Positions 12,517 to 43,829 of a stretch of 64,000 bases of DNA are shown in pieces (position 1 is the stretch's first letter; every line of letters begins with the position of its first letter). The notes below the pieces were generated by a model that did not search any database, was not told where the DNA came from, and saw only the letters and a list, made by a program, of their open reading frames with translations. The DNA is from Epiperipatus broadwayi. Lineage: Eukaryota > Animalia > Onychophora. The stretch is from NCBI GenBank assembly GCA_028023455.1, contig JAQFVV010000004.1:16554001-16618000 (forward strand). The letters are read 5' to 3'. Both the position numbers and the translations under genes were made by a program.

Positions 12517-13284
12517 ATAAAGGTACTGTAGAAGTTGCTCTTGTCAAACCACATTTGATGAATGATAAAGGTACTGTAGAAGTTGCTCTTGTCAAACCAC
12601 ATTTGATGAATGATAAAGGTACTGTAGAAGTTGCTCTTCTCAAACCACATTTGATGAATGATAAAGGTACTGTAGAAGTTGCTCTTGTCAAACCACATTT
12701 GATGAATGATAAAGGTACTGTAGAAGTTGCTCTTGTCAAACCACATTTGATGAATGATAAAGGTACTGTAGAAGTTGCTCTTGTCAAACCACATTTGATG
12801 AATGATAAAGGTACTGTAGAAGTTGCTCTTGTCAAACCACATTTGATGAATGATAAAGGTACTGTAGAAGTTGCTCTTGTCAAACCACATTTGATGAATG
12901 ATAAAGGTACTGTAGAAGTTGCTCTTGTCAAACCACATTTGATGAATGATAAAGGTACTGTAGAAGTTGCTCTTGTCAAACCACATTTGATGAATGATAA
13001 AGGTACTGTAGAAGTTGCTCTTGTCAAACCACATTTGATGAATGATAAAGGTACTGTAGAAGTTGCTCTTGTCAAACCACATTTGATGAATGATAAAGGT
13101 ACTGTAGAAGTTGCTCTTGTCAAACCACATTTGATGAATGATAAAGGTACTGTAGAAGTTGCTCTTGTCAAACCACATTTGATGAATGATAAAGGTACTG
13201 TAGAAGTTGCTCTTGTCAAACCACATTTGATGAATGATAAAGGTACTGTAGAAGTTGCTCTTGTCAAACCACATTTGATGAATA
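12517..13284. repeat. Minisatellite, 48-bp unit x16, near-perfect
   Basis: Unit ATAAAGGTACTGTAGAAGTTGCTCTTGTCAAACCACATTTGATGAATG; only one internal substitution seen (G>C in unit 3) and no spacers. Confidence 0.97.
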
Positions 13285-21962: not shown

Positions 21963-23028
21963 ACTATAACGTAATTTATTAGATATCTTTTTTTTTTTTA
22001 GTATTGATACATTATCATTTCATTATTGGGATTTTTTATTTATAAACAAAGTTTTCATAATAACCAATTTGTATGTTCTGTAAAAATTCAAACGTAAGTT
22101 TGTACCATTATTCCCAATAATTTTGTACTATTGTTTACAATTGTTATTAACATGTATATTAAATTTTCTATTGAAAAAATTCAGTCTAAAAACTTTTTCA
22201 GCTGTGCAAAATAGTGAAGAATTTCAAGACTAGTAAATACCAAATAACCTCATAGCAAATCTAAACTATGCAATCTTTTTTCACTAGATGGCACTTCAAA
22301 AAAAACTTGTAATGAATCAAACTTCCTTTTTATGGAAGAGCTGCTATATCAATATCAAATCAGGCAGTTTCTTAGTTATAATGTTCACGTATTCCATATA
22401 TTTATATTTTTTAAAAAATTTATAATATTTGTCTTAATTATTATCACTACTTTTTGCTTTTCTATAATTATTATCACTGATTTTATAATTATTTCTATTG
22501 TTGTAATGTGCCATTCACCAGGCATAATGCATTAGTCAGATTGTGTGTGGCAATCTTTTTTTAGATGTTCTTTACTAGATTTTTCAACTTATATAGCAGA
22601 TATTAATATGCTCAAATAGGGCTTTGTAATCATACAATCATCTGACAAGTGAAACTCTTAATCCAAATTCAGTAACAAATAACTGATTATTATTGTAATA
22701 TTCTTATTAAAGTCACAACAAAGGACAACTAGTTTTTTTAAATCTGTCTCAGCCATTGCTTTCTCAGTGCTAAAAGCTTTGCAAAAAACAAAATGAAAAA
22801 AAATGCATGTAATTAAATTTCCATTATCATAACAACTAATGGATGCAGATGAGCAATATGAGAGCTTCATGATACCCAAACTCTAAATTAATTTGGCTGA
22901 AGTTAGTAAAATAAAAATTGTTTGTTTCAAAAATACTATTTAGATAAGCTATTAATTAATTGCTATTGGGATCCATAAAATCTATGCAAAAACAATAATT
23001 TAAAAATATAATTACTATATTAATTTAT

Positions 23029-23145
23029 ATATAAGGGACTCAAACTCAGACTTTCACATGACCCTCAACTCTCCATGCCATGTGAAAGTCTGAGTTCGAG
23101 TCTCTTATATATTACATTATATGTGCAGGTGTGTACAGGGTATTA
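23029..23145. mobile_element. Family-A fold-back element, short copy (no ribozyme core)
   Basis: Arms ...AAGGGACTCAAACTCAGACTTTCACATG / CATGTGAAAGTCTGAGTTCGAGTCTCTT...; flanked by AATTACTATATTAATTTAT (23010) and AATTACATATTAATTTAT (23146), a probable TSD with one indel. Confidence 0.8.
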
Positions 23146-24344
23146 AATTACATATTAATTTATGTATTTTACAAATTAATTTCTAGAATTATATTTGTGT
23201 ATTATTATGGGATTTTTTAAAATCTAACTTATTCTTTCCACATTCATTTTTATATAAATGAATACAGTTTTTTGAGTTCTTAAGTACATTTGGCTGGTTT
23301 TTATTTTATTTTATGTAATGTTTTGTGCTCACTTAAGGTTATTTAGAAATAATTGTGTCAGTAAAATTCTTTGGCTATATTGAGACTAGCTCCCATATGG
23401 TTTTGATTTACCATTATAAAATTGTATAAATAGTATATAGGTGTTTTTAAATTAAATTTATTTTATTCGGATTTTTCTAAAGGCTATTTTTGAATGCAGA
23501 GACAACTACATGATTGCTTATTATTCCTAGTACCAACTGTTTTAGGGTGATCTACCTGGATGTTTTGGGGGTGTGGCTAGAGAATGAAATGTTTAAGATT
23601 ATTTCAGTATTTTGATTTTCATTTTTTTATTAATATTTAATTATTTTTTTCTATTTTTAGAGGTCTCTCTTGCTAAAATTAAGCACTCAAGGCGCATGTA
23701 CTAAAGTTTTAGCCTTAAAAAAGTACTATTTAATAATTGTAAAACAAATTAACCAGAACTACCCTCTTACTTTTTGCTTACCTGTTTGTATTTTTTGAAC
23801 CAGTAAGAAAAATTGTAAAGATTTTTGGGAAAGAAAATGCTATAGATATTTTACCACATGGCATATTAATAATTCTAAAGCCAAGATATATCATAATAAA
23901 CAAAATTCTATTAGATATAAGATTAAAATCTAACATCAAATATTATTGAATATGATCAAAATAACTATAATGGTTAAAAAGATAGGAATGAATTGAAAAC
24001 AAATATATAGAATAAATAAAATAACACATTACTTTTTAACTTTGCAAATATAATTGAAGTCATATTATTCTCACCTGAAAATTCTCATGTACCACTAATT
24101 AAATGCACCTTATTAATACTAATTATAATAAGCCACTTTATTATTTTGTATAGTCAAGTTAATGATTTAAACATTCAAATCAATCAAAAACTTTGAATTC
24201 AGGCCTGCAACATATATATATATATGTGTGTGTGTGTGAGAGAGAGAGAAACAATTCAGAGTTTTGTAATTTGGGAAAAGAAATATCAAGTTATATATCC
24301 TATGTGTAATTTCAAGAGATTTAAAACTTTTCTAAACAAAAACG

Positions 24345-25465
24345 CAATTCACTATAAATCATACAACACACATACTAAGAAAAGCTTGTTTAATACTTTA
24401 AAATAAGTATACTAAATGTATCAAAATCATATGCTGAGCATACTTTCAATTAATTTATAGTCATAATCATAGGTATTATTATCCAAGAGAATTGTGAGAT
24501 TTATAGAAGAATTACTAAAGTAGTGATTTACATAATATTTGAGTATAAGGTGTAAATGAATTTATTTACATGAGCCATTGGATAGAGGATACAGGATTCT
24601 TTTTGTTGATTGCATGTATATTATTGGTGCTGTGCCAGATCTTTTTAACTTTGTGTTTGGCATTGTTTCTCTCAGAGCAGACAATACTGGTGGATATGCA
24701 TTCAAAGCCGCAACCAGTTTGGACTGTTGTTTAAGAAAGATGGATTTAATGTCCATATTAGTTTTGACTTTTGTAATTCTTGTGAGGGATTGGCATGAGA
24801 TTCTCCAAAGTATACTGCACTGCAGTTTGTGTTATTGGATATAATTTTATATAGTACTTGGGAAATCTGCTCTGGTGGCAATTTATCTTTTATATTGAAT
24901 TGCCTGATTAACAATATGAAAGATAAGTTGCCACCAGAGCAGGTTTCCCAAGTAATGTATAAAATTACATGCAATGTCACTAACTGTAACACAGTTTACT
25001 TTGGATAATCTCATACCAATCTCTCTACAAGAATTACATATCACAAATATCAATACAGTTGAGCCAAAACTAATACAGATATTAAATCTATCTTACTCGA
25101 ACACCACAGTCACAGCTTTGAACCTACATCCACCAGTATTATATTTCTTCGAGAAACAATGCCAAATGTAAAGTTAAAGAGGCCTGGCATATTGCCAATA
25201 ATGTAAATACAATCAACAAGAATCCTGTGTTCTCTTGTCAAAAAATGGTTCAGGTAAATAAATTAATTTACATTTTATAATCAAACCATTTTTGTGATTC
25301 TTCTATAAATCCCATAATCCTCTTGAATAATTATAGCTGTGAGTATGATTACTAGTTAGTTGAAAGCGTGCTCAGCATACTGTTTTGATGTATTTAGCAT
25401 GTTTATTTTAAAGTATTAAATGAGATTTTCTTAGTATACATGTTGTATGTATTATTTATATTGAA
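24345..25465. mobile_element. Head-to-head inverted duplication of a Penelope-like element 3' end: decayed GIY-YIG endonuclease plus 3' terminal region
   Basis: Plus arm from 24915 reads NNMKDKLPPEQVSQVMYKITCNVTNCNTVYFG*SHTNLSTRITYHK...SILLEHHSHSF...LRETMPNVKLK then, after a frameshift, EAWHIANNVNTIN (VYKI.C..C...YIGE..R...H, EA..I pattern). The minus arm reads KDKLPPEQISQVLYKIISNNTNCSAVYFGES. Arms about 550 bp. Confidence 0.8.
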
Positions 25466-26410
25466 TATCTTACGTCGGATTATACAATACCACACTAAAC
25501 ATCAGAGTTCTACGTAATCGTTACAAGTCTATTTTAAGAAAAATGCTAGCCAACATCAAAGGCAATTAATTGATAATATTTACACATGTTGATTAATCTG
25601 CATTGATGATGTTATCACTTTCACTCTCCATTTTTTTTTTTAATTAATAATGTATGATATTTTCATTTTTTTAACCGTTTCAAATTCTATTATTTTTATT
25701 GTACATTTTTTAAAATTTATTTTTATACAATTTTCTTATTGGGGGGGGGGGGGTAAATGTGTTTTTCGATTATTAAACTTCTGCTATTCAATTTTTGAAA
25801 AATTATCTTTTAAAAATCCAATCACAGACCTGCAATGTCTTTATTTTTTATTGTAGTTCTTTATCTTTTTATTATAATTATTCGTATAGGAACAGATTTT
25901 GTATCTGCAGAGAACAAATGTATTCTTAGTGCTATTGCTTTATATTCAATTGCTTTTATACTTTTGTGCTTTAATTTACAATTGTTATATTATATTCATC
26001 TATGAAAACACATTTGAGGAGCTATATGAGGGCTCAATCTAATTAATGACACCTCTTTGACCCAAAGTAAATCTTAAGAATCATTAACATATATATATTA
26101 CCAGACATGTGTGATTATAATAGCAAATGAGCAAAAAAAAAAAATGAATGAATAAAAATTAAGATTACCATGAACAGTGCATTAGATAATCACATGTTTT
26201 ATCATTCAGGCGGTCATAAAAAATGACGCAGCTGAAGCCGTGACAAGACTTTGAACTCCAGAGACCACTATTCTATTATTAGACTAAACTATGCAAGTTG
26301 TAAAAGAATTTATACATATATTTGAACTTTATTAAATTTAGAATCTATATTTAAAGTTAATTTAAATACAATAATTTCTAACTTAATAAAAGATGATTAA
26401 TAATCATTTA

Positions 26411-26632
26411 ATTATTTATTTATCTTTTCAATATGAGTGTGATGTCAAGCTTTGGTGGCTGAGTGGTTAGCACAGGTGCCTTACAAGCAGTTGTCCCGGG
26501 ATTCGCTTCGCGGCCGACGCTTTGATACATTAAAAAAAAAAAAAACATGTTTGTGATCAGGTGGGTTAGCAATATGAGATGGTATAGAGAATTGACGGTC
26601 ATGTGAAAGTCTGAGTTCGAATCCCTTATATA
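26411..26632 (+). mobile_element. Family-A element, 5'-truncated single arm, interrupted by a mini-SINE
   Basis: ATTATTTATCTTTTCAA...[SINE]...GTGATCAGGTGGGTTAGCAATATGAGATGG...ATGTGAAAGTCTGAGTTCGAATCC matches the arm at 35320-35414. Confidence 0.8.
26444..26545 (+). mobile_element. tRNA-Gly-derived mini-SINE, copy 3, with A-tail and ~14-bp TSD
   Basis: tRNA-like core 26449-26520 (72 nt; TGGCTGAGTGG A-box, CTTACAA loop). Direct repeats AATATGAGTGTGAT (26430) and AACATGTTTGTGAT (26544), 11/14 identical. Confidence 0.85.
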
Positions 26633-27444
26633 TTAAATATTTATTGAAATTTTATCATTATAGATAAGTAATAAACATCACATGACCGCTTATTTATAGA
26701 TAAGTATTTGCTAAATTAGAAAAAACACTTGTAAAGATAAATGACTTAATATATTTTATAATTTAATCAAAGCTTATAAATTTATTTTGTTTCTGCTTAG
26801 TACAGCATAATAATTACGTTTCTATTATTCAGCTTTGAGGGAGTAAACCATAATAAAAGGAAAATCAAAGAACTTTTTTTATATAAATAGAAATATGACA
26901 TCATTATTTAATCGGCAAAGTAGGATATATTAAAAAATTCATAAATCTTGAGACAAATTTAAAATGTTTAGCAATTGAGAAGTATTTATAATTGTTATTA
27001 TAAATATTTATTATCATCGTGATTATTTTCTAATTATTTAACAAGTTTCGCTGGTGAGGCAATTAATTGACGTACTGTATCTCCATGTGCATAAATGAAA
27101 TCTAGTTCACCTCTGAAAAACTAAATTATCAAACTATCTCTCTACCAGTCAATCTTAGGATAATGTGATGATGATTACTTGAATGCCATCTATAATCTTG
27201 ATTATAGAACCATAACCATTCCATAACTAATCTCCCTCAACTTTATTTTTATCCATTATTTCCCGTAATTATAGCTTTATCAATTACCATAGGCTAAACA
27301 TAGAACTTGTCTCTGATTTTCCCAAATATCAACTAACACTCGTAAAATTAAGAATAAAGAAATTTAAAAGCTTTAAACAAAAACAAATTATTTAATGCGA
27401 TAAGATTTGATTATAGTACAAAATGAGCATTTTCCAGGCTAAAT

Positions 27445-27544
27445 ACCAAGCGTTGGTAGCCGAGAGGTCAGCGCAGCCGCCTTGCAGACAAACTTGTCGC
27501 GGGTTCGCTTCCCAGCCGATGCTTTGACATATATAAAAAAAAAA
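27445..27544 (+). mobile_element. tRNA-Gly-derived mini-SINE, copy 4
   Basis: AAGCGTTGGTAGCCGAGAGGTCAGCGCAGCCGCCTTGCAG...GGGTTCGCTTCCCAGCCGATGCTTTGACATATAT plus A10. Confidence 0.8.
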
Positions 27545-29432
27545 CTTAGTAATTCTGTTGACACATATTGATAATTTTAAAACCGAAATTTTCCAAATTG
27601 ACATGATCAACTCAAAAACATATATATATATAACACATTTATAAGCAGTTACCAGTCCATTCTATACTATCATATCAGTTTCATATATAAATAAACAAAA
27701 AATGAAATGAATTGGGGATACCTCTCTTTTCTTCTGAAATGCAAAGTTTCTGATCTTACTAAATATGAATAAATATTATAAAAAGTATAAATAAGAAATT
27801 ATTACAATATTTCAAATATAGATGAAACATCAAATACCACATAAGTCCATTTTTAAATGTAACTAAAATTAGTAATAAAGAAATTATAAATTTTGATTAA
27901 AAGAAATAAATACAAATGTTCTTATTTAGGTTTTTTAGGATTTGAATTTCAGATTACCTTAGACCTTAGTATAAGACTTTGGAAATTTGCAGGTTTGTTT
28001 GAACACTTGTGTGCACTAATTACTGAAGGTTCAAGTCTTTCTAGTTCTTGCTTTCTGATGAGGAGTTTCCTTACGTTGACAATTTTCTTCTTATCCTTGC
28101 TTTAATCTTCTCTTTTTGTCTGCTAAAATTCTATTAAACTTTCACCATTACATGTGAAAATTTTGAAAATAGATATTTTATATTCAGCCAAATCAGATTA
28201 TAAGAGATGAAAATAGGTTCACAATCTGGAACCAACACTTTATAAAATCCTGCAAGCTATATCTCAACAGGATTGTCAACAATTGGTATCATCGGTTCAT
28301 CTAAAAACACATTTTAGGGTTTTCTATGCTGCTATAATTTGAGATAACTTCAGCTTCTAAATGTATTACCACGTTTTTCTCTTTTATGGCAACTGCTTGC
28401 TTGATTATGGATTGTCACTAACTTTGTTTGAGAATATAGCTTATACGAATTTAGTAGGTACCTACCAAATGCTGGAAGCCAAGTAATTATTATATTTAAA
28501 ATCAGACCTTGTATGTTTTTTCAGTTCACAAATGCAATAAAGATCAAACATATATTGTTATTTGATTTACAATTCCATTCATTAATTAAGTGCACACTTT
28601 TAATATATCTGTAAACAAGCTTTACTGTTTACTTCAAACTTATTTACTGAACTATTTGCTGGATCAATAAAATTTCTAAACAAGTTAATTATTATTTTAG
28701 TCAGCTTTAAAGAAATTATTTAGTTTTTACACTTAACATTACAATTATTCCTTAAACATTACAAATTCTCATTTTACCAAATTATTGAGCATAATATTAA
28801 AAAATTTACATTTACAAAAGTAAGAATTATTAACTCTAAATATTTATACCCTGCTTAGTGCCAGACTTTTATGACAGAATTCACAATAATGAGCATCAAT
28901 TTACACATTTATTTTGATTTACAATCAATTTTCTCTATAACAACCTAAAAAAATTTTAAAATTTTTTGGGTGACCAATTTTAAAAATGGCAGCTTGTTGC
29001 TATGTTTTAAGATTGATGACATCATAGCAAAATTACTTTATTAAAATTATGCTATCCAAAAGCAAAATAGCATTTATTTTATTCATTATACATAATATAG
29101 TGCATAATATTTTGATTATAAATTTAAATTATAATTGAAGTATAGTAGAGTACTTCATTAATGGCATATCCAAAGTAAAGATTTTCATCATTAATGACTA
29201 CAAAAGTAAAAAAAAAAGTGTTTCATTATAATAATTAATCAAAATTATATTTTGATGGCATATAAAAACCATATGTATTAATACAGTATTAAATTTTAAA
29301 ATGTATATATTAGTTTAAAAACTCTGTATTGTATTTATTCATTTATATGGATTAAAATTTTTATATGATACTTTGCTTGTGGTAAAAATTATGATCATCA
29401 TATTGCAATTTAGTTATCATGATTGTTATTTC

Positions 29433-30215
29433 AGGAAAAAAATGATTTCATGGATTATGCAATTAATAAACAACTTTACATGATCAATGGTTACTAAATG
29501 CAGAATATGTTTAAAATATTTATTGTATTGTACTATACAATTATTTGCTTAATTTCAAATTACAATATTGTAATTTGTTTCAGACTTATCCAAGCCAATG
29601 CTAATATCACAAATGTAAAACAGAATGCTAAATTGTATTGAAAAAAATACAAAATTCATTCAGCATAAAACTAAAAATAAATTTTGGTTATATATAATGT
29701 ACTATTATTAAACTCTTCAATCAACTAATTTTGTACTAAAACTTTCAGTCAAATCAAAACTGCTATAATATATCTAAAATGTTTTCAGTAAAAAAGGGAA
29801 GAAAATGATTTCATGATTTATGCAATTAATAATCAATTTTATATGATCAATAATTATATCTAAATCAAAAATAACTATTTGGTCAATTTTAAAATGTCTC
29901 AATTTATTTCAGATATCCAATGCAATGGCAAACATCACAAATGTAAAAAAATTATAGTACTGAAAAAAAATGTAAATTTCATTCAGCATATAACTAAAAA
30001 TAAGTTTTGGTAACGTACTATTAATATTTAATTTTAAACAGTGTATAGCATAAATATTAGCTAAAATAGTCAGTCAATTAATTTTAAATTAAAATCTTTA
30101 TGAATGCTAATTTCAGTCATATTGAAACTATGATTATAAATGTATTTTTGGTAAAAAAAATATTTGGATGATTTCATGCATTATGCAACTAATAATAAAT
30201 TTTGTATAATGAAAA
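29433..30215. repeat. Old tandem duplication, ~365-bp unit x2 plus a partial third
   Basis: ATGATTTCATG..TTATGCAA.TAATAA recurs near 29443, 29806 and 30168; CATCACAAATGTAAAA-like and TTCATTCAGCATA blocks recur in register. Confidence 0.75.
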
Positions 30216-31083
30216 TGCAATACAAATAAATTGAAGAATCATACTTTTAATATTTCTTTAAATAAATTATATCTCTGCCATCATTGTCAAGTATTGCACT
30301 ATTCAAAAAAATTTAAAGTCATTTCAAAGAAAATGGCCACCATGCTTGATAAAATATGACATCTCATGTTTAAAAAATGCCACAGATAGTGTATTTCTAT
30401 ATAAAATGCTATTTATTTAGATTTGAATATGTTGTAAAAAAATCCTTAAAAATTGATTTCAATATGCAAACAAAATGTATTAGATACTCTTTTTTCTTTT
30501 TTAACATGTCAGAATGTTTATATTTATTTGAAATTACCTGTGTAATTAGAGTTTGGTAATGTACAGTTTTATAATTTGGTTACCCTTACAGTGTTGATAA
30601 ATAACAAATTATTATGGCCAATAGTACAGTTAAGTGAGACATTATTAAACATGGCTTTTTAATTCTAAATCATTTCACATAAATAATATAAGTTTATGAA
30701 TTATAAAAAAGGAAACTTCAGTGTGATTTTTTTTCTAGCACAATAATTAACAATTTTATGGAAGACACAAAAAACTGTCAACTGCGAACTTATTCCTTCT
30801 TTCTTGATCTGTTTTTCTATACATTTACACACTGAAACTACATATTTTTCCTTTACAGCTATATATGTTTTTAATTGGAATCATAGCAACTAACACCAAT
30901 GAACACCACACCACTTCTTCAACCCATAAATGTAAGAATCATCACAACTATTCTTTTATCACACACATCAAATAGAGAAGTTTAATATGATATATTAATA
31001 TTATTAATGTATAGAAGAGATGAAAGATGGTCAAACATTTTAAATTTTAACAAAAGATTTATAATAATAATAATAATAATAGT

Positions 31084-31323
31084 AAGTATAGAGGATTTGA
31101 ACTCAGATTTTCAAGCACCCTTCAACTATCCACACTATCTCATACAACTGATACACATGACCACACACTTGTAGAAAAGATTAATAATCACCAATATACG
31201 TATTTCATGCTAAACCAGCACTAATCTTTTCTACATGTGTGTGGTCATGTGTATCAGTTGTATGAGATAGTGTGGATAGTTGAAGGGTGCTTGAAAATCT
31301 GAGTTCAAATCTTCTATACTTAC
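31084..31323. mobile_element. Family-A fold-back element (partial hammerhead on minus strand in the loop)
   Basis: ~95-bp arms AAGTATAGAGGATTTGAACTCAGATTTTCAAGCACC... / ...GGTGCTTGAAAATCTGAGTTCAAATCTTCTATACTT; loop holds CACCAATATACGTATTTCATGCTAAACCAGCA. Confidence 0.9.
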
Positions 31324-32526
31324 AATTAAGCTCCCAGGTTTGTGAAGAATGCCTGGTTTCAAATATTTAATAATAATAATCGCTAATTCCAAAGTATAAA
31401 CGTAAAATATCTAATAAGAAAATATATACACTAATCAAAAAAAATATTTGCAATACAATTTCTTATTTATAACTACAGTCAAAATAAAGTAGGAATAATA
31501 ATAATAAAATACTTTGTAAGTCTAACATTCTTTTAAAAAAAAGATTAATGGATTTGTCAAAAATAAAATTAATTCTCATTCAGGTCTCTTTGGTTTTCAA
31601 CTTTTTTCTAAGCTCAAAAATAATAAACATTCATACTTTTATTACATTCTCTTGCAGGATTAAATGAAAAATAAAATTTTTCTTTCTTGAGCATACACCA
31701 GATATTATTTCTGAATAACTTTGAAGTATGCTATTCAATGTTCCTATAGATGAGTCAGTTTTCTCTTATTCCTTAAAAGTTATCCTCACTCTTTTTAGAG
31801 TATTTTTCTTTTGAAATTTAAAACTAATTACAACTTTGATATTTATTTAAATTATCATTTCTCAATTATAAAAGTTCAATTCTTGTGATTCGCTTCAAAT
31901 TTTATTACTTTAACTTCGTCTTCTTACTCTTATATAATTTACAGTTCTATATATATATTTAAAATAAATAACTGCTGATAATTATGTGTATAGGTGAGGA
32001 AAGGTATTGATTGAAAATAGGCATTTGTTAGTCAGGCTTTTGAATTATTTTTATTTAGCTAAGTTTCCAGACAAACTTACACCCTGGTGGATCAGTGCAG
32101 ATAATACACTTGTTTAAGTTTCATCCTCCATTCTTAACTTTCCAATAAATCAGTGAATTTTTTCCACAACAATATGATTTTCCGACCTATAACTACTTTG
32201 TACAATGATATTGTTTATTTTTCTCCTTTACTTCTACTTGCTTGGCTGATGATTTGTCATGGTTTTCACTGGGTTAGATTTAATGGGCAACTGCTTTCTT
32301 TTCAATGTTGATCTAATCTGTTTTTGGTTAGTTTGAAACTATGATTTAAATACTTATCTCAATCTATGGCTTAATAAAATCAAACAAGTATCTATGTTTT
32401 GAAAAACAGTTAATTTTACTGCACCTGGATGTTTTTCAAGAATTAATCATGTAGTTGCAACCATTGTACCAATTTTCATTCATTAACTTACAAATCTAAA
32501 AACGTATATAATAAATAAATATCTAA

Positions 32527-32739
32527 CATACAGGCTATATATATATATGCCTGTACAAACAATGTGATATATAAGGTATTTTGAGCTCAAACTTTCACAT
32601 GATCCTCAACTCTCCACACTATCTCATACTCCTGATACACTTGGCCACATATATGTCTAAAAGAGAAATAATCACCAAGTGTATCAATGGTATGAGATAG
32701 TGTGGAGAGTTGAGGGTCATGTGAAAGTCTGAGCTCAAT
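32527..32739. mobile_element. Family-A fold-back element
   Basis: Arms 32580-32644 and 32679-32739; the left side carries the family 3' tail (ACAGGC...GCCTGT hairpin) in minus orientation. Confidence 0.85.
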
Positions 32740-32780
32740 AATCAATAAAGCAAGTCATATATCACATGACATTGCTTTTA

Positions 32781-32918
32781 TAAGCTTGTATTTACAAATA
32801 TGTAATATAGGGAGCATACCAACAGCTCAATAAGAGCTATTCAATAAGATAAGAGCTTGTTTGAGCTATTCCTCTGCTCCCTATATTACATAAATTTATA
32901 AACGAGATATTCCAAAGC
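32781..32918. repeat. Hairpin/MITE-like inverted repeat
   Basis: ATGTAATATAGGGAGCA...AGCTCAA pairs with TTGAGCT...TGCTCCCTATATTACAT. Confidence 0.75.
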
Positions 32919-34939
32919 AAAATGTGACTGAATTTTTATTTTTTCGCTTTTTTTTTTTTTTAAATTCATTTTATGTTAATAAAGAAATGCTCATTTATGC
33001 TGTGGGGCTATAGCAATTTATTTAATCTCTGATATTTGATTTTAAATTTACAGTATTATCAAATTATCAAAGCGTTGTTTGTGTTCATTAATACTTCTTT
33101 TTCAAGTTTTAAATATATGTGCACACACACACTACATTGTGAGCCATAAGACTAATTTGCCTCATACTGTTTATACTTTTCACAATGCTTAAGGCATTAA
33201 AACTCTGGCAGATTAGCTTTGAAATTTGGAACTCCATGCAGCATTATCAAATAATTGCAGATATAGATTTTATTGTTGCCATTATCTTGCAATATAACAT
33301 TCTATAGTAATTAAAAAATTAATTTATTGTAATCAATATTATGTATCTAGGATTACCAAATTTCCATTTCAATAATACATGTTAATAGGCAGAAACTAAT
33401 CTGTGGAAGTTATAATACTATTGCCTGTTTTCATTGATTATTAAAGGAAAGTGAATAAAATATTCATTCTTTGCTCAAAAAAGAAAATTTGTTTCAAAGA
33501 TAACTTCAGTAAACAAAGGTTACATCGGTAATTATATATATATATAGGTATAATCTAGTTATTAAGTTCAATAAACGGGTTGGATTTATGATATTATGGC
33601 AGGAAGTTAGAGTCTGGACCGAAGTTTTAAGAGGGACCATATAGCTGCAAAAATGTCCGGGTATGCAATCTTGCTATCTCTGGTTCTTATCTGTTCAAGC
33701 TTATTGGAGAAGATAGCTGGGTCGTGTCTAGTGTTGTTACCAAGGCAGAAAGTACATCTCATATACCAAAATGCATTTTATGTTATATATTAACATTGTG
33801 AATAGTATTGTATAAACATTTATTAATTCCAATATTTTATAATAAGAAGTATCTCTTATAATTTAAATCTAATTTGTCAGATTAACTATATGATGCACTA
33901 AACGTTTTTTTTAAAAAAGCTATCATTATACTGAAAGAAATGGTCCCTTGAATGTTTTGAATGAAGGGGCAGCAAAATTGTATTGACTTTTTTTGTTAGT
34001 CATTTTAATATCATATTCATTTTTTTAATGTAGCCAAAACAGCTAAATGCAGGGCGTATAGGCATCTTGGTGTTAAATAGTCACAAGGACAAAATCCATA
34101 AATATATCAGTCAACCCTATGAACTTCATGAGTTTAAGTTTTCATTATCGTTTTGTCTTTTATAAAAAAAAATATTGAAGCGGTAATTGACAAAGAGCTT
34201 AATTGCTTATAATTTTAAAAATATTAAGCGTCATAATTAAATTAAGTAAATAAATATAATATTACTGTTTTTTAATTAAAATATAAAAATATATTAGTGT
34301 GAATATTGAAATATACTCCGCTAATATGTTATTTAAATGTTTCCATTTCTAGATAAATACTTTCAAGCTACAATATATATACCTATATATGAAGGAAATA
34401 TGTTTAGTATTTGATGTGATATTTGCAACCCTTCTCTCTAATCATTAATTAAAATAAAAGATTAATTACTAAAAATAAAAGATTTTTACATCATTTCACA
34501 TTTTATTTTGATTAATTGCGTATTTTGACTGTCTGTTCCGTTTTTCTGTTTTAATATGTGATATTTTAATACAAATCAATAAGTTGCAGATATTTAGACA
34601 AATTGTTACATTTGCAGTTACAACATCTTCACACATGATTAGATGCAGCCAACATTTGCTACTCCCTGGACACTCATAGCCTTCATAATAATCAGCACAT
34701 TCTTAACGCCATTTGAGACTTGATGAAAAATGTAAATTATATCTCATATATATATATATGTGTGTATTTTCGACATTGTGGCTCACTCATTAGTATATTA
34801 TATATATCTAAATTAAATTAAATTTACTAAGTAAATAATGCGGATTCGAACTGAGACTTTCATTACGACCCACTACTCTCAGTGCCATCTCATATTGCTG
34901 ACCCACCTGATCACACACATGTTGAAAAGATAAATAATC

Positions 34940-34983
34940 ACCAATATACGTATTTCATGCTAAACCAGCAATCGTCAGTTGGT
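34940..34983 (-). ncRNA. Minimal type I hammerhead ribozyme motif (family A)
   Basis: Minus strand ACCAA CTGACGA TTGCT GGTTT AGCAT GAAA T ACGT A TA TTGGT; core intact, U-U at the first stem II pair. Confidence 0.7.
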
Positions 34984-35275
34984 CTAGATTACTATCCTCA
35001 CACATATATATATAATCAGTGCTCAGCTTTATATTAAGATAGCCAATCTTCATACTTTAATGGACAGGCTTCAAACTATTCAAACTCACAACTCTTCAGT
35101 CTTCCATTTCATTCAAAATCTGATGGTGGAACGTACAAAGTCCTTGTTAGTGCCAAGGTTGTCATCCTACCCATGTTGACATATTAGTCATTCTGACCCC
35201 TCAAAGTATGAAGATTGGCTATCTTAATATAAAGCTGAGCACTGATTAAATATATGTGTGAGGATAGTAATCTAG

Positions 35276-35319
35276 ACCAACTGACGATTGCTGGTTTAGC
35301 ATAAAATGCGTATATTGGT
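35276..35319 (+). ncRNA. Hammerhead motif, mutated (GAAA>AAAA)
   Basis: ACCAA CTGACGA TTGCTGGTTTAGCAT AAAA T GCGT A TA TTGGT; G12 lost, so predicted inactive. Confidence 0.6.
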
Positions 35320-35689
35320 GATTATTTATCTTTTTAACATGTGTGTGATCAGATGGGTCAGCAATATGAGATGGCACTGAGAGTAGTGGGTCGTGTGAAA
35401 GTCTGAGTTCGAATCCTGCATATATTACATATATAAATGCAGGTTAAGCCTGTACAATGTATTAAGTAAATAATGCGTAACCATATCATTTATTTTTTAG
35501 TAAATATTGAAAGGCTTGAAAGTTGCACTGTTTACAAAACTGTACTGATCTCTTCTTGAGTATATTGCAGCACGTTATTCATTAAAAAGTATTAATATCA
35601 GATTGTTTTATAAATAGATTCTTTCATTTCCTTTCTATATATATAAAACGCGCTCCCCAATACAAGACATCTGAAAAAAACAAAAACAA

Positions 35690-36700
35690 ATGCCCTCCAA
35701 AATGCATTTCATGCTAAAGCAGCACTTTTTAATTGGTCAAGGTCACAATCTCTTACATGACTTCATCATTTGTTTAGTATTTATCAATACTAAATTATTT
35801 CACTTTGATTTAGAAATGTTAAACTTTCTGTATGTCATAACCAATCACTTTACATAAATACATAATGATTGTCATGAATCATTTATTAAACAAAAGATTG
35901 TTTATAACCCAGTATAAAATCTATGAATCAGCTTAATGTATTATCTGAGCTACAGATAATCTCTAGTTTAATAAATAATAATTATTCATCACTAATATAT
36001 TTATCTGAAGAGATCGATGTCAAAGTTGTGAGTGAAGAAAGTTTGATATTTGTAAATCAAAGTGTAATTTTATATATAAAGAAAGGAAATACCTTGTGAT
36101 ATAGAAGTAGCACCTTTTTACTTACCGATTTTATAATCTGGGTAAGAATTTGGGTCTATAAATAAGCTTGAAATTTTTTTCAATTTCCTTTCAGGTTTAG
36201 GATTTTTCTGTCAGGCAATTGGCTTATAGCTGATCTATTTAACTATCCAAAGATAAAAATCTTCAACAATTAGTAATTATCAAACTCAGTAAATAATGCT
36301 TTCTCCCCAATCATTTCTCTATAAGGTGTTGCTGGAGAGATCTTTGTGCTACAATTGGTGATACCACATAAATAAAATTTCAAAAAGGATTACGAGTATT
36401 GTATTAAACATAAATGATAGTCATAGATTTATGAATATAGGCAGAAATTATGAGTAGTCTTACTGCAGGTTCAATATTTACATAAAATACAAGATATATT
36501 TTACTACTATACAATAAATAGGAAATAAGTTAACAGAAGTTGCATGATAGTTATTTTGATCCTATATTGCTGAAGATATCAGGTGTGAAAAATGTTTTGC
36601 AGCAAATGAATCCAGCACTTATAAGCATTTTGACTTGCAAATGATTGCTCCAGTGTGACTGATTAAATATATACAGTTGTTCATTATCTTTTTAATCATT
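35690..36700 (-). mobile_element. Possible very decayed Penelope-like coding region ending in a family-A-like hammerhead remnant
   Basis: Minus-strand fragments LNRSA, KEIEKISSLL and NSYP resemble the PLE RT thumb (LI.RA...E...I...L..NGYP). They end at GACCAA TTAAAAA GTGCT GCTTT AGCAT GAAA TGCAT near 35700-35740. Many stops and frameshifts. Confidence 0.35.
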
Positions 36701-36750
36701 GATAAGAATTTTACATGGTGTTAAACTGAGAGCCTAATAATATATACAAA

Positions 36751-36991
36751 ATATTTTACAATAAATGCTTTTATTTACTGTGACTAAAAAAATCAAAAAA
36801 ATAATTGCTTTCTTTAACTACAACTGGGGTTTTTATATTTAATTTGAAATAAAAGCCCAAGACATCCAGAAATTAATTAATTAATATCAACATCTCTGGC
36901 TTTTATTTCAAATTAAACACTGTGGATTGTAAACACAATTATTTTTTTACTTTTTAGTGCACAGTAAATAAAAGCATTTATTGTAAAATAT
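36751..36991. repeat. AT-rich palindromic element (~105-bp arms)
   Basis: ATATTTTACAATAAATGCTTTTATTTACTGTG...TAATTTGAAATAAAAGCC pairs with GGCTTTTTATTTCAAATTA...CACAGTAAATAAAAGCATTTATTGTAAAATAT. Confidence 0.85.
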
Positions 36992-37668
36992 ATATTATTT
37001 TTAATTTTTTAATATTCAGATATATTGTAATTATTCCTATTTAAAACAAAAACAATGTCACAGTCTACATATTTTAAAGGAAATTCATGGTGCATTAAAA
37101 AATCAATTTCTAATATTAGTTTGTTTATGAAAGAATCATTTTTAAAAAAGAAATATTTTTTGCCCATTTTAAAAAAGCAACTTTTACAATCAATTGAAAT
37201 TTTTTTTATTTCTATTTTAATTGATTCTTTTTAAATAAGTGTTTAAAAATATACCACACTCTCATGTGCATTACTGAAAACTTAGTGTTTGAAATATAGT
37301 CAACCAGTACCTTTAGACTATATAAACCAATGAACAACCCTGAAATATTTTATTGCTGAATTGCATGTACAAAATTTGAAGAAAATTCATTTGACAGAAG
37401 TATGTTAAAATTTGATTATAAAACAGTCTATATAGGCAAACAGTTTTTAAGTTAAAAAAAGCATTTAAAAACAATCTTTTTATTAATCCCAGTGACACTG
37501 GAAATTTAATATGTGGACAGAAATTATAGATTTTTATAAATATACCTTAATCTCTTTGTAATTGCATAAGATTAAGATTTCTAGATACCTGACGGAATGT
37601 AAATAAAATGATGCCATCTTTTTGATATATCTGATATAAGTGCAATTTTTAAAACTTATTAGAAGTTT

Positions 37669-37836
37669 TTATATAAATACAATTTATCCACTACTTTGAA
37701 CACTTTTTAGCAAAAACCATATGTTTCGACTGTCCTGCAGTCTTCTTCAGATTGTAAGATTGTGTATGTATATAGATACAATAAAAAGTTTTTGCTAAAA
37801 AGTGTTCAAAGTAGTGAGTACATTGCATTTATATAA
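37669..37836. mobile_element. Fold-back element with hammerhead core in the loop (family B)
   Basis: ~50-bp arms. Minus strand 37755-37718 reads CTGAAGA A GACTG CAGGA CAGTC GAAA C ATAT G; cleavage triplet and stem I degenerate. Confidence 0.7.
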
Positions 37837-38723
37837 GATATTACAGCAAAATAAAGGAAGTGATGAATTTTTTAATATTTCTGAGTTCTTATTTATTTAT
37901 GAGAATTATTAATTCATTAATTGTCATTTACGAGAATAATTCTTCATTTATGAGAATAATTGTAGTTAATGAATACATACTAAGGCCCAGCGTGATTTAG
38001 AGCTGTGATAGAGTAGCAGACTTTGAACTTTGAATGTTCTTCGATCACAATTCAGCTGTCACTTTCGGTGCTTAAACTTATGAATTCTGAGCAATAAAAT
38101 TGTTTATTTTATTTAACAGTTGCTTGATGCTAACTATATGTTATGCCTTTGAAGCCAACTACAAATATTTTTGCAGCATGTGAATGTGGCCTGTAACAAT
38201 AAAAAATCATTTGAATTATTTTATTTTTAAAAATCTGTTACATATGGAAATGTTCACATATGTAATGTTTATATAAATAATGCACTGGTTGTGACTTTTT
38301 AAAATCATTCTTGAAATTGACTTCCTTTATAGGATGGATATAATAGTGATTTACTTCATTAATAAAAAAAGTAATGGCATATTTGCAAAGTTTTATTCGA
38401 TTCTGGAGTGGCAGACTGTGGAACTCAAGATCCACTTCCAGCTCCATCTCTGGCGCTTCCAATGATCAAACTTTGTCTATACTTTCAAATAATGAACCAT
38501 TTAATTATTTTTTACCCTATGTGGACTATGGAGTTCAAGATCCATAAATCATGACTCTAGTTCCACCACTTCCTGCATTTGAACTTCTTTTGCAATCCTG
38601 AGAAATAAACCATATGATCATATTTTTTTTAGTTACTAGAATTTGATGAAAATTTGTTGATTTAAGAGATTAAATGAAAACCATTTGCTAAAGTTCATTC
38701 AAATTATAAAAATTATTTAGTAA

Positions 38724-38805
38724 TGCACTTGGAACTCTCAATTCAAAAACACAAGCCAGAACTACAAGAAAAAGATGGTGTTTTGAATTGAGAGTTCCAC
38801 GTGCA
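38724..38805. repeat. Short hairpin (~29-bp arms)
   Basis: TGCACTTGGAACTCTCAATTCAAAAACAC / GTGTTTTGAATTGAGAGTTCCACGTGCA. Confidence 0.85.
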
Positions 38806-40520
38806 GTCATTATTACATCTGATTGGCTGTTTCATAAGCATTTTTAAAGCGCATCTGTCAAAGGTTTTAGCCTTTCATGTTATTATTATATCATCTGCTT
38901 GCACTTAATAAATTTAATATAATTATTTAGGGAAAAAAAATTGGATCACTTGATTCTAAATACGCAAAAAAATATTTGTAAGATTTGTTTTATTTGATCA
39001 GAAGTTTGACAAAAAATTTTATTCCTATTATCAATTGAGATATTTATATAAAACATTTTGAACAAATTTTCAGCCTTTCACTTTAATTTTGAATAAAATT
39101 CTAAATCGATTCAAATAGGCTTAAGATGAAATAAATTTTCTTAGATCTGGGAAATTGCAAACAATTTTTTAAAATATTATTATTTTTGCTTAATAAAAGC
39201 CAATATTGATAATAGGATTGATTTCAGGTAGATGTATATAGACTAATTTCTCATTTTGAAAGCAAATGAAATGATATAGTAATAGGTGTTATAAAAAAAT
39301 GATTACTATCAGTCATAGTTGCCATTACTTGGCACATTTTAACATATTTTACTGTTTCATTTCAATACTTTAATGTTAAGCTACATTAATAATAAATAAA
39401 CAAATAGGTATATGCTAGGAAGGAAATGTGTTGTTCACCATTAATGATCAGGTTGAACTATAATCTAGGGCTCTTTAATTTTCAAATCTATCTATAATCA
39501 ACCATTCTAAACTGTTCAGAAAATCAGGGTGCATGATCTCGGGTAATTAACTTTGATTAAAATCAGTAGTTTGGTTATGTGCTATTAATGTTTGGACTGA
39601 AAATTTTGAAGTGATGGTTCATATATGGTGGCTTATATCCAAAGGAATCCATACTTATGGAAGAAATACTTGAATCATATAATATAGTTTACAATTAATT
39701 ATAAATATTTGATTAGAATTTTACGATAAATAAAAATTTATTTGAAGTTATTTTTAATGCTAAATAAGAAAAATTATATTAGAACATTAACAGTACAATA
39801 GGTACTTAATCATCTTGATTAAAACAATGCAATTGGATAATTATTTAAGCTTCTTGGAATGCAAACGTAATAATTAGGGAAGTTTTTTTGTATTTTTACT
39901 TTTACTGCTTGAAAAAATATTCTTTTTTTTTCAATGATTAGATCCTAAATAGACAAACATAATCAGCAATTGCATAATTATCAAGGATAATGGGTAAATC
40001 TGTTACCATTGTCTAGTTGTGATATTGATGATTATTTTGTTGAAAAGAGATTGCCTTTAATGGAATTCCAATAGAATAATTATCGATTAGTTAAAGAACT
40101 TTTTCTGCAGAGAAGTTTTTAAAAAAAAATTTGATTTTTTTGTTTTGTTTTTAGAATCGATCATGGTTTGTAAATCAATAGTAGATACAAAATGACAATG
40201 ATCAATATGGTGAATCTTCACATAATGGTCTGGCACTAAGTAGGATATACACGTATTAACAGATTTTAAAGATGGGTCAAACTTAATTGAGATCAATTAA
40301 AAGGCAAGACAACATATGAAAAAAAGAAGGTGAAAATATTTAGAAATGATCATTAAGAAAAATTAAACATCTGGAATTTCAAAGAATGGTATTTTTTAAA
40401 AAAAAGGTTAATAATGATATAAGAAAATATAACTGTAAATTAGCAAGAAAAGTATAGATGAGAGTAAAAGTTTCAAAAGTATATTGCAAAAAAAGTTATT
40501 TCAATAAAGATGAAACTAAA

Positions 40521-40690
40521 CAGGTAAAACTCTCCATGCAGTAGTGCCACTCAGTGCCAACCAGAGTAATCAATGGATGCCAGAAGGTCTGTGCATAAAA
40601 TCCCTATCTAGGTCCTACTTATCCAATATCCCCAGACTAGTTTCTGGCTTGTGGCACTGAGTGGCACTACTGTATGGAGAGTTTTGCCTG
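40521..40690. mobile_element. 170-bp MITE with ~45-bp TIRs
   Basis: CAGGTAAAACTCTCCATGCAGTAGTGCCACTCAGTGCCA / TGGCACTGAGTGGCACTACTGTATGGAGAGTTTTGCCTG; sits inside the RTE remnant; TSD not clear. Confidence 0.8.
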
Positions 40691-41402
40691 TTTTAATAAG
40701 TTATGTGCTAGCATAAGAAATAGTGATCATGTAAAGATGAAATTATATATATAAAAAGAGAGGTGTGTGAAAAAACATAGTAATAAGAAACAAAACAAAA
40801 ATAACCACTGCAATTACTATATCTTTTGAAATGCCAAATCTTTTAAATGAAGAGATGAGACATGCGATAGAAGCTGGAATTACTATTTATATTTTAAAAG
40901 AAGCAAATGAAATAGAAAAATTGTTGATAAAACTATATCTAAATATCTCAATGGTAAAAATTAAGATGATTTGAAGAATGCAGTAATGACATTTAAGAAA
41001 GGTGATAAAGAAGATATTAGAAAGTGTAGGTCCCTATTCTATTATTTCTACACAAAATCTTTACCAAGATAATTATCATTCGTTTGCAGCAAACTTTGGA
41101 TTCAAACCAAATCAAAAGAAAATTAGGCGGATCAGCATCCAAGTATTAAGAGAAGTTATAGAAAGCCCTATGAATGAGTTATCATTATGTTTTGATTTAT
41201 AGATTATGAAAAATAATATACTATAAGCATATCTACAGTGATTAAAGCATTAGATCATCAGGATATAGTCCTAGAATATTGTCATATTTTGAAGAATATG
41301 TATCAAAATTCAACAGCAATGAGTGACACTGAGAAAATTAACATTGATATGAATGTATCACAGTGTGATTTCAGATCTCCGAAACATCTTTGGTAGCTTT
41401 AC

Positions 41403-41645
41403 AAGCTGAGCTTTGATTGTATATATGTGTGATGATAATCTGGACCAACTGATGAATGCTGTTTTAGCATGAAATACGTATATTGGTGATTATTTATCTT
41501 TTCGCCATGTAGGTAATCAAGTGTATCAGTAGTATAAGATAGCACGGGTGGTTGAGGATCATGTGAAAGTCTGAGTTCAAAGCTCCAATATATTACACGT
41601 ATAAGTGCAGGTATGAAAAAAGTCTGTACTGTAAGAGTATTTAGT
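41403..41645 (+). mobile_element. Family-A element, single (non-inverted) arm inserted in the RTE remnant
   Basis: Colinear with 35241-35470 from AAGCTGAGC through GTGAAAGTCTGAGTTC to the TGCAGGT tail. Confidence 0.88.
41444..41487 (+). ncRNA. Minimal type I hammerhead ribozyme, fully canonical copy
   Basis: Stem I ACCAA/TTGGT; core CTGATGA; stem II ATGCT-GTTTT-AGCAT (5 bp); GAAA; stem III AT/AT with palindromic loop ACGT; predicted cleavage after AUA (41482). Confidence 0.82.
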
Positions 41646-42585
41646 ATATATCTTTAGTCCGTTTTTTTATTATCTAATAATTCTAGTTTCATTTCCTGAA
41701 ATTTTGCAAGGATTATTTGCAAAAGTAATTATGTAATCTGCAAAATAAAAATGTCTTAATTTAGCAGAAACGTAATGGATAAAATTAATCATGGAATTAA
41801 ACTTGGATGGAATGCTTTTGGTAGAAATAACTTATTGTTAAAAGGGAATATGCCTACATATTTGAAAATGAAGACTTTTAAATAGATACATATCACATTT
41901 TGTTTTACACTTGCTAATATGAGAACTGGACACTTAACAGAACAATACAGAGACTTCAAATCTCAATAAAGTATGGAGAAGAAAACATATAGTTGTTGTT
42001 GGCCATTATTGAAAGAATTAAGATATTGCAATAAGTTATAATGCCAGAAGAGAATTCCAAGAAATTGTAAAATATCTAGAAAGAGACCATGTGATGTGAA
42101 TGGATAAAATTAGGAAGTCTGTTGGTATTCTGTGGAAAAGAGAAGCTATAAATTGAAGAAATGAGTAAACTTGCAGAGCCAATTATCTTGCAGTGAATGA
42201 TTAATGATCAAAAATAAGTGAGTGCAACATATAATGCAAATAGGATTTTGTCTTTGCTTTTAACTAAATTATTAACATTTTGACTTAAATCAGTTGTTAC
42301 TGGGTGCTGCTTTTAATATTGGAATTATATTATAAAAAAATGTTATTGGTTTTTGCAGAATTTTAATTTTTTGAATGTTGACGTCTCTCTCTTTTACAAA
42401 CAAGATCCTTAGGAAAAAGAGTGCTAATTGTTTTTAACTTGCCATACTTTCAAAACTGTATCTATTGAATGACTATTAAGAGAATAGGTTCTGTAGTTTT
42501 TTCATTGAAATTTCTGCCTTATTTTATATATTTAATTTGTTATGCATACATGATCTTTATTTAAACATTTTTATTAAGGCTCATT

Positions 42586-42880
42586 TCACACGACCCACCA
42601 CTCTCCACACTATCTCATAACACTGATACACTTGAACACATATACGTTGAAAAGATAAATAAACGTATTTCATGCTAAACCAGCAATCTGGACCAACTGA
42701 TGATTGCTGGTTTAGCATGAAATACATATATTGGTGATTATTTATCTTTTCAACATATATGTGTTCAAGTGTATCAGTGTTATGAGATAGTGTGGAGAGT
42801 GGTGGGTCATGTGAAAGTCTGTGCTCATATACCCTATTATATATATATAGACACAGGTATATAATAAGCCTGTGTTTCAG
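42586..42880. mobile_element. Family-A fold-back element with exact 15-bp TSD
   Basis: TTATTAAGGCTCATT at 42571-42585 and 42881-42895; the two arms join at the AATC microhomology near 42685. Confidence 0.92.
42692..42735 (+). ncRNA. Minimal type I hammerhead motif (family A)
   Basis: ACCAA CTGATGA TTGCT GGTTT AGCAT GAAA T ACAT A TA TTGGT; core intact, loop III ACAT (CpG decay of ACGT). Confidence 0.7.
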
Positions 42881-43829
42881 TTATTAAGGCTCATTATTGT
42901 TTAGTTTTAAATAAAATATTTATATATATATAGGTTTGTTCAAAGTATTTACAAGAAGTTTCCTATTAATTAATTGACAATAGTAATATATATTTCTGAT
43001 TATAGTAATAGGCGATATCATTTCTTAAATTAATTCTATAATTATTCTCTGTAGAATTCATTAGTTTTTTACAACTAGGACAATATTAGGCAATGAGCTC
43101 ATTGGTTCAATATTCTTGATAGAAACAAAGCTCAATATTTAATGCTTTTAATATATTTACTAATAAACAATATATCATGTATAGCAGTCATAAGACTTTG
43201 GTTCCCAGTTTTCATTTTATATGCTTAGTATATATCTTGATTTCTAATTGTTTATTTCCCTTTGACTTTCATCTCCAGAACTGACTCCCCAACCACTTGA
43301 GGTATTGAGTAACTATATAAATGTGGAATGACTGGGACAGAAAATTATTAGCTGGAAAATGTCATGTGATTTTTTTAAATCCTCCATAAGGCAATTTATT
43401 CAATATATCTGTCTTCTCATTGCTAAGTTCAGTAATTTTTAGTATTACAAGAAACAGCTAATTATATAATAACTAGTTGAAATATTATCAGTATTTGTAA
43501 AATTGTCATATGACTTTCATATATATTCATTACACTTATTAATTATAATTACATATTGAACTTTTCCCCATTTAATTGCATATTTTAAAATGAGTGGAAA
43601 TTGCTCTGTTCTGTAAATTTAAATATCAATCACTTCAAACTAATTTGCATTGAATATATTAGTTGATTTAATATTTGTTCCTCTGGCTGTTTAGGTTCAA
43701 GATAGCTTTACATATAAAACCTTGGAGTATAGTAAGAAATAATCTTTCTTAGTATAAATCGTATGACTTTTACAGCTATATAGAAAGAAATGTGGGAGGG
43801 GGGGAGAAGAATGTAACTGACCTTATTGA

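Follow-up and report, generated by a model that had tools for sequence, protein, structure and literature searches.

The window analysed here, 64,000 nt of the onychophoran Epiperipatus broadwayi (assembly GCA_028023455.1, contig JAQFVV010000004.1, positions 16,554,001 to 16,618,000 of the forward strand), contains a cluster of related short repeats, family A, most of them arranged as palindromes and some of them carrying a hammerhead ribozyme motif. Family A is very probably a non-autonomous, non-coding element of the animal non-long-terminal-repeat (non-LTR) retrozyme type, inserted by the reverse transcriptase (RT) and GIY-YIG endonuclease of Penelope-like elements (PLEs). The initial annotation of the window, made from its letters alone, had proposed a non-coding, ribozyme-bearing, PLE-mobilised family that would easily be taken for a miniature inverted-repeat transposable element (MITE), and had regarded the class as known. 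The ends of the copies, their partial tandems, inverted arm, tail and target-site duplications (TSDs) support this proposal more firmly than did the evidence first given for it, and by most of the properties tested the class is that of the animal retrozymes.

Family A in the window and in the genome

Copies were placed on common coordinates with an nhmmer profile built from 17 full-length genomic copies, alongside a repeat search of the window; the genome assembly that was searched comprises 5.6 Gb in 18,588 contigs. The window is AT-rich (GC 24-35% in 2-kb bins). Both approaches place family A between 23.0 and 42.9 kb, at seven loci and one weak fragment (Table 1), and the profile, run over the whole window, detected no copies elsewhere in it. 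The seven loci at which a ~250-bp sequence had been reported to recur were all recovered by both searches. The recurrence is thus sound, and the length is not that of the full unit: the ~250 bp represent only the 3' part, truncated on its 5' side, of a ~467-nt unit. The description of the loci as mostly head-to-head palindromes proved accurate: five of the seven are head-to-head pairs, and the other two are solo copies, one of them split by a short interspersed nuclear element (SINE). Long inverted pairs were returned by the repeat search at 31077/31222, 32581/32675, 34865/35247 and 42584/42738, with arm complementarity of 92-97% (97% for the arms of the 31077-31355 locus).

The extent of each copy determines how much of the unit it retains. 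Both arms of the 23025-23137 locus start 3' of the hammerhead and hold no ribozyme motif. The 26416-26641 copy is without the hammerhead core and is interrupted by the poly(A) SINE at about 26440/26451-26544. The 32522 locus likewise has no core, and the 5' end of its main copy, 32522-32678(-), falls at the predicted hammerhead cut site. What appears as a unique centre at 35064-35197 is additional 5' sequence of the inverted arm of the 34828 locus, and the weak fragment at 35684-35752(-) is missing the CUGANGA box. The window copies are worn, mostly shortened, dead products of retrotransposition, each head-to-head locus being a single insertion event.

The reconstructed unit is 467 nt long, with a tandem period of ~488 nt, a GC content of 39% and one hammerhead motif in its middle. 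It is non-coding, as the longest open stretch in a unit dimer is 84 codons. First-look searches gave 4336 and 3983 genomic candidates, both lower bounds, indicating thousands of copies in 5.6 Gb. The 40 scored matches of a hammerhead-region query were 87-91% identical to it and those of a 5'-region query 87-94%, with a shared 5' start at query position 42 in about 30 of the 40 matches of the latter. Upstream of the unit start lies either flanking DNA or a conserved linker of ~25 nt that leads back to the 3' end of another, partial unit, and in genomic partial tandems one unit passes into the next without a break.

Insertion anatomy

The anatomy of insertions was read from 88 genomic loci together with the window, and the 132 profile matches in this sample were grouped into 81 complexes. 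Solo copies account for 44 complexes, direct partial tandems for 14, head-to-head pairs for 22 and a tail-to-tail pair for one. A tandem part is also present in 12 of the 22 head-to-head complexes, and a seamless partial second unit was found in 26/81 complexes overall. The 5' ends are scattered over profile positions 58-419. The 3' ends are bimodal, falling at 436-452 and 484-503; when read at the nucleotide level beside TSDs, the long ends lie at ...AAATTCATAT(T) and the short ends at ...CAAACCCCCTATAT, ~55 nt apart, the short end falling immediately after CAAACCCCC. Every one of the 22 head-to-head complexes has exactly one long outer end, the other being short, a pairing that is very unlikely to arise by independent draw (roughly 0.5 to the power 22).

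Exact flanking repeats of at least 10 bp were found at 15 of 75 complexes versus 5 of 150 shifted controls. The TSDs are AT-rich, 9-15 bp long and enclose whole multi-part complexes. Three lie in the window, namely the exact pairs around the 34828 and 42571 loci (Table 1) and (AAT)n around 31077-31355. As a separate observation, short upstream partial units (L062-L089) have 5' ends that cluster at profile ~387-419 in nine cases, which may mark a preferred stop or template-switch point.

PLE insertions are characterized by 5' truncation, by partial tandems that form pseudo-LTRs (pLTRs), by an adjacent inverted 5'-truncated copy, and by a terminal extension, or tail, that is frequently present at one end only (PMC8557442). 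In vitro, the enzyme of an Anolis PLE cleaves and extends both target strands, and its RT starts at two adjacent internal sites, one in an AC-rich stem-loop, whose spacing equals the tail (PMC11167929). Family A shares with PLEs (Craig et al. 2021, PMC8557442; Frangieh et al. 2024, PMC11167929) the 5' truncation, the partial tandem, the inverted copy on the 5' side, a one-end tail that two internal RT starts would explain, probable cleavage and priming on both target strands, and AT-rich or microsatellite targets. Its anatomy is the published PLE insertion signature. The position of the ribozyme is also comparable. The Anolis hammerhead lies just upstream of the RT starts, with the AUG of the open reading frame (ORF) inside CUGAUGA, the cut site at +26 from that AUG and the RT start about 111-118 nt into the ORF (PMC11167929). 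In family A, the hammerhead is again upstream of the presumed RT start, the predicted cut lies at +31 from the AUG in CUGAUGA, and the two 3' ends follow that AUG by ~145 and 200 nt. Family A differs from PLEs in having no RT or endonuclease ORF and in its tail of ~55 nt, not 30-40.

In the mechanism that we propose, the PLE enzyme would cut both target strands with a stagger of 9-15 bp, and complementary DNA (cDNA) would be primed from each 3'-OH, starting within the element RNA at either of two sites (cf. the Anolis PLE in vitro, PMC11167929). The two cDNAs would halt at variable points and then be joined head-to-head, which would produce the fold-back look. More tentatively, and with the balance of probability tilted against it, the long/short rule could be the footprint of a dimeric PLE enzyme that primes both strands at once, its protomers starting at different sites of two template RNAs. 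If true, the stretch of ~150-200 nt between the hammerhead and the 3' end would constitute a minimal cis-module for enzyme recognition, and this short, abundant retrozyme would be a natural minimal substrate with which to dissect PLE integration.

The hammerhead motif

The family consensus reads ACCAA-CUGA(C/U)GA-GUGCU-GGUUU-AGCAC-GAAA-U-ACGU-A-U-A↓UUGGU (arrow, predicted cut) and has a perfect canonical core with a G10.1-C11.1 pair. Helix I consists of 5 bp and, beyond a UGG bulge, a further 6 bp (AUAAUC/GAUUAU). Helix II is 5 bp long, and helix III has 2 bp closed by a palindromic ACGU tetraloop. This layout identifies the motif as a type I hammerhead of the canonical metazoan kind, as found in non-LTR retrozymes. 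It had previously been likened to the minimal hammerhead of PLE pLTRs. The type I topology, the short helix III and the palindromic loop were described correctly; the identification with the loop-less minimal hammerhead ribozyme (min-HHR) does not hold. PLE min-HHRs (Cervera & de la Pena 2014, PMC4209133) resemble family A in type I topology, a likely need for dimers and PLE-type mobility, but are devoid of helix III and loop 3, whereas family A has the three helices given above, including the long bulged helix I.

A descriptor search, as proposed in the initial annotation, was run with strict type I requirements (helix I of 5 bp, CUGANGA, at least 4/5 pairs in helix II, GAAA, closed helix III, U-H) and found three matches in the window and none in 100 dinucleotide shuffles. 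The hammerhead is reached at three loci only, in four arms, of which three pass the descriptor and one carries G12 -> A. The earlier statement that the recurring repeat contains a hammerhead is therefore correct for these loci and not for the others; the 23025, 26416 and 32522 copies are truncated past the motif. The cut expected after 41482 is right for the motif as written.

Among 93 sampled copies spanning the motif, 32 are descriptor-intact. The variable positions in these 93 copies are three CpG sites, N7-G8, C11.1-G12 and loop 3, and the losses represent CpG decay. At 10.1-11.1 the pairs counted were G-C 40, G.U 30, U.U 9, A-U 5 and A.C 4, the other pairs being nearly invariant; CpG decay together with subfamily markers could account for this variation. 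In diverged subfamilies, including those of the window, identity to the main consensus is 88% in the hammerhead block versus 80% in the flanks. The window arms are 97% alike among themselves yet only ~84% like the main consensus, and thus stem from separate source lineages that retained the motif. The greater identity of motif than of flanks in the diverged subfamilies is modest evidence that master copies were under constraint.

In canonical metazoan type I hammerheads, helix III is weak, which allows an active dimer to assemble from two copies (PMC4209133, PMC7229834). For two 79-nt copies of 41425-41503, ViennaRNA predicts that helices I and II persist and that an 8-bp helix III forms between the molecules, at -33.9 versus 2 x -13.0 kcal/mol. 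The hammerhead probably acts as a dimer on multimeric transcripts, and would free unit-length RNA that is possibly circularised. Cleavage by the Anolis hammerhead was assisted by protein (PMC11167929).

In Logan contigs, family A occurs at very high multiplicity in DNA contigs and in runs whose labels name three organisms (A, B and C). The word depth summed across a copy peaks at the hammerhead bin of assembled contigs. At one genomic locus, L063:1776-1808 (hammerhead bin), the word depth in DNA run X1 is 2-30 times that of the neighbouring bins, and many contigs there share the motif and diverge upstream, with loose ends at 1761. The hammerhead thus seems to be common to several families or subfamilies.

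Alternative origins of the copies

A first alternative holds that family A is a SINE-like element, like Schistosoma Sm-alpha, moved by the RT of a long interspersed nuclear element (LINE), not of a PLE, with the hammerhead as cargo. Sm-alpha and newt satellite 2 (both cited in PMC4209133 and PMC7229834) are high-copy short repeats with type I hammerheads that have a weak helix III and cleave as dimers; Sm-alpha is SINE-like with an RNA polymerase III (Pol III)-type head, and newt satellite 2 forms long tandem arrays. In our sample family A has neither such a head nor long arrays. Its copies are nonetheless short, non-coding and 5'-truncated with long TSDs, as this alternative predicts, and older copies contain GAGTTCGAATCC, which nearly matches the Pol III B-box consensus, immediately 5' of the short end (profile ~410-430). 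This string occurs in the window at 35398-35412, 26610-26624 and 23088-23100, and the main subfamily has GAGTTCAAACCCC instead; it may be a promoter remnant, the context of an RT start site or a chance occurrence. ARAGORN detected no A-box, tRNA fold or other tRNA-like head in family A, and the copies have no poly(A) or simple-repeat tail. Two internal 3' ends, a long and a short end in 22/22 pairs, partial tandems and a 22:1 head-to-head excess over tail-to-tail pairs are hallmarks of PLEs and not of LINEs or SINEs (PMC8557442, PMC11167929), and a LINE-driven origin is improbable.

Alternatively, the copies might be heavily 5'-truncated pLTR pieces of a coding PLE and not a separate family. 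PLE hammerheads do lie in pLTRs, PLE insertions are mostly 5'-truncated (PMC8557442), and the genome is full of PLEs: a search for GIY-YIG (PF01541) gave 10241 first-look candidates, all 150 of those scored exceeded the Pfam cut-off, and some matches lie within open frames of 800-900 codons. However, an ORF was never found upstream of the unit start in ~30 copies chosen by their 5' region, the unit dimer is without an open stretch of more than 84 codons, and 0/30 PLE loci share sequence with family A. Since the unit leads back into itself with no ORF in between, this origin is very unlikely. As an observation on the coding elements themselves, GIY-YIG matches are often closely spaced inverted pairs, e.g. 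C6351:2388234-2388500(-) and 2388918-2389184(+), and the coding PLEs of this genome seem to share the head-to-head insertion habit of family A.

A MITE or fold-back DNA transposon, with a hammerhead-like string present in long terminal inverted repeats by chance, is excluded. The palindromic look and highly complementary arms of five of the seven window loci would suit it, but 44/81 complexes are solo and lack an inverted arm, the arms are unequal with inner (5') ends that differ at every locus, the paired outer ends systematically differ (long versus short), and the motif exceeds chance, being absent from 100 shuffles. Fixed short TSDs, which the initial annotation had named as counter-evidence, were not found, nor were DDE-type ends; TSD length varies from 9 to 15 bp and the outer ends are unequal. 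Formation of the palindromes after insertion by local rearrangement (replication template switching or hairpin-mediated inverted duplication) is hardly credible. The 5-11 nt overlaps at arm junctions would suit it, as they fit microhomology joining of any origin, but a single TSD surrounds the whole two-arm complex in at least ten cases, and the outer ends obey the long/short rule where a later duplication would leave identical outer ends or none.

Relation to described retrozymes

The reading of family A as a PLE-inserted retrozyme places it beside the animal non-LTR retrozymes, non-autonomous derivatives of PLEs (Cervera & de la Pena 2020, PMC7229834; Li, Clavereau & Pollet 2026, bioRxiv 10.64898/2026.07.22.740005), with which it shares a small, low-GC, non-coding unit with one type I hammerhead, a short helix III with a palindromic tetraloop, TSDs of more than 4 bp, numerous monomeric or dispersed copies, and PLEs in the same genome. 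The axolotl HHR_Amex2 motif (PMC7229834) has U.U at the base of helix II, as does the window subfamily. Retrozyme size is quoted as 150-450 nt, so the unit of about 470-490 nt lies at or above the upper limit. In contrast to classical retrozymes, family A has no long tandem arrays in the sample, reaching up to ~2 units, and its prominent head-to-head arms with a one-sided tail are an anatomy that we did not find described in the cited retrozyme literature. These differences (larger unit, few tandems, head-to-head arms, 55-nt tail) are of degree.

Observations that weigh against a PLE-inserted retrozyme

Several results run counter to this assignment and are collected here. The first concerns the partner. 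In 30 GIY-YIG-centred loci, out of the 10241 first-look candidates, blastn and nhmmer revealed no autonomous PLE with pLTR or 3' sequence in common with family A, and the linkage to PLE RT/GIY-YIG ORFs that the initial annotation proposed as a check was not seen there. Apart from unrelated family A copies nearby (L037, L043) and a weak distant look-alike in L039, at inconsistent positions relative to the ORF, these loci gave no match. The strict descriptor (C3-G8, A3-U8 or U3-A8 cores) gave 0 matches in the 30 PLE loci, a negative of little weight, as it also misses copies of the U.U type. Furthermore, no tandem array longer than ~2 units was present among the 81 complexes or in the window.

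The second concerns recognition of the ribozyme. The Rfam hammerhead search suggested at the outset returned no window hammerhead at gathering or at E<=10, even with 121 nt around 41444. Rfam Hammerhead_1 (RF00163) does align over its full 45 positions to L077:1848-1893, a genomic G10.1-C11.1 copy and the best one tested, at 14.1 bits (E 0.78) versus a gathering threshold of 34. The loss of score sits in helix III, where the model expects 4 bp. Rfam also matched hairpins annotated as microRNAs (miRNAs) in the window, which we rejected as a mere reflection of the palindromes.

The third concerns selection and activity. Compensatory covariation was not detected above chance decay, and in inserted copies of the main subfamily conservation of the core (0.91) versus that of the flanks (0.92) corresponds to neutral decay, as is expected of dead copies. 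No peak of 5' ends was observed at the cut site among 65 unselected copies, a test of low power with fuzzy alignment ends. There is thus no footprint of cleaved templates, in accord with the Anolis PLE, for which unprocessed RNA is the main substrate (PMC11167929). Finally, Logan runs guessed to be RNA hold family A, and DNA runs do likewise with a similar profile, the RNA or DNA nature of these contigs being uncertain.

Table 1 Family A copies and hammerhead motifs in the window (positions are those of the window)
Feature	Positions	Strand	Profile positions and ends	Remarks	Source
Head-to-head insertion, small	23025-23137		inverted arm 381-439, short 3' end	inverted arm 23025-23083(-)	nhmmer
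Direct arm of 23025 locus	23077-23137	+	402-463		nhmmer
Solo 5'-truncated copy	26416-26450 + 26545-26641	+	~334-445, short 3' end		nhmmer
Head-to-head insertion in (AAT)n microsatellite	31077-31355		inverted arm 292-435	inverted arm 31086-31229(-)	nhmmer
Direct arm of 31077 locus	31219-31355	+	335-469		nhmmer
Head-to-head insertion, main copy minus	32522-32767		main arm 327-478, long 3' end	main arm 32522-32678(-)	nhmmer
Short arm of 32522 locus	32674-32767	+	360-444		nhmmer
Head-to-head, single insertion event	34828-35477			exact 15-bp TSD TAAGTAAATAATGCG at 34828-34842 and 35463-35477	
Inverted arm of 34828 locus	~34843-35203	-	72-437, short 3' end	profile match 34834-35203	
Direct arm of 34828 locus	35197-35457	+	210-474, long 3' end		
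Weak fragment like helix II/GAAA part of hammerhead region	35684-35752	-	273-343	17.5 bits	
Solo 5'-truncated copy	41396-41638	+	235-481	90% identity to main-subfamily consensus	
Head-to-head, single insertion event	42571-42895			exact 15-bp TSD TTATTAAGGCTCATT at 42571-42585 and 42881-42895	
Inverted arm of 42571 locus	42586-42692	-	288-412	profile match from 42584	
Direct arm of 42571 locus	42685-42876	+	281-473		
Hammerhead, 3' half only	31183-31220			in inverted arm of 31077 locus	
Hammerhead, intact core CUGACGA...GAAA...UA	34940-34983	-		U.U at 10.1-11.1; predicted cut between 34945 and 34944	
Hammerhead with G12 -> A	35276-35319	+		AAAA for GAAA, at 35303; predicted inactive	
Hammerhead, intact core	41444-41487	+		A-U at 10.1-11.1; helix III 2 bp + ACGU loop; predicted cut after 41482	
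Hammerhead, intact core	42692-42735	+		U.U at 10.1-11.1; loop 3 ACGU decayed to ACAU; predicted cut after 42730	

Neighbouring features of the window

The SINE that splits the 26416 copy (window 26440-26544) is tRNA-derived and carries a poly(A) tail. It contains TGGCTGAGTGG, similar to an A box, and GGGATTCGC, similar to a B box, and is flanked by an imperfect ~14-bp duplication of the host copy. Its position inside a family A copy indicates that a second (LINE-type) retrotransposition system was active after family A. A palindrome of 1.1 kb occupies 24345-25465, with arms 24354-24524/25285-25455 and 24784-24897/24912-25025, and the peptide encoded by its inner ends looks like the beginning of a GIY-YIG motif (...VMYKITCNVTNCNTVYFG). 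We considered it as the endonuclease end of a PLE; this was not confirmed, as Pfam gave no GIY-YIG in the ORF pieces and the palindrome has nothing in common with the 30 PLE loci.

Three further features lie in the window. An uninterrupted ORF of 1259 codons at 46080-49859(+) encodes a multi-C2H2 zinc-finger protein with a ZNF423/ZNF521-like atlas match (score 0.97), and is probably a host gene exon that follows directly on the repeat-rich part. At 12452-13289 lies a tandem array whose period is 48 bp; all three long ORFs there represent 16-residue repeats in different frames, and GC rises locally to 33%. Three direct repeats 363 bp apart and a second pair 323 bp apart (D6, D8) lie at 29434-30219, between copies of family A, and form a short tandem or dispersed repeat unrelated to it.

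Implications for retrozymes and PLE integration

What appears to be a cluster of MITE-like palindromes represents, on the evidence above, very probably a number of separate insertions, each one retrotransposition event of a retrozyme that bears a hammerhead. Elements of this kind will be missed or mislabelled by repeat annotators and Rfam thresholds. The insertion anatomy ties retrozymes to the PLE machinery, independently of the phylogenetic argument made in a 2026 preprint (10.64898/2026.07.22.740005). The element class itself is already described, and the main value of family A lies in a clean footprint of PLE integration with two strands and two start sites. The long/short end rule, together with the geometry from hammerhead to 3' end, yields testable predictions for PLE integration, a process that is poorly understood.

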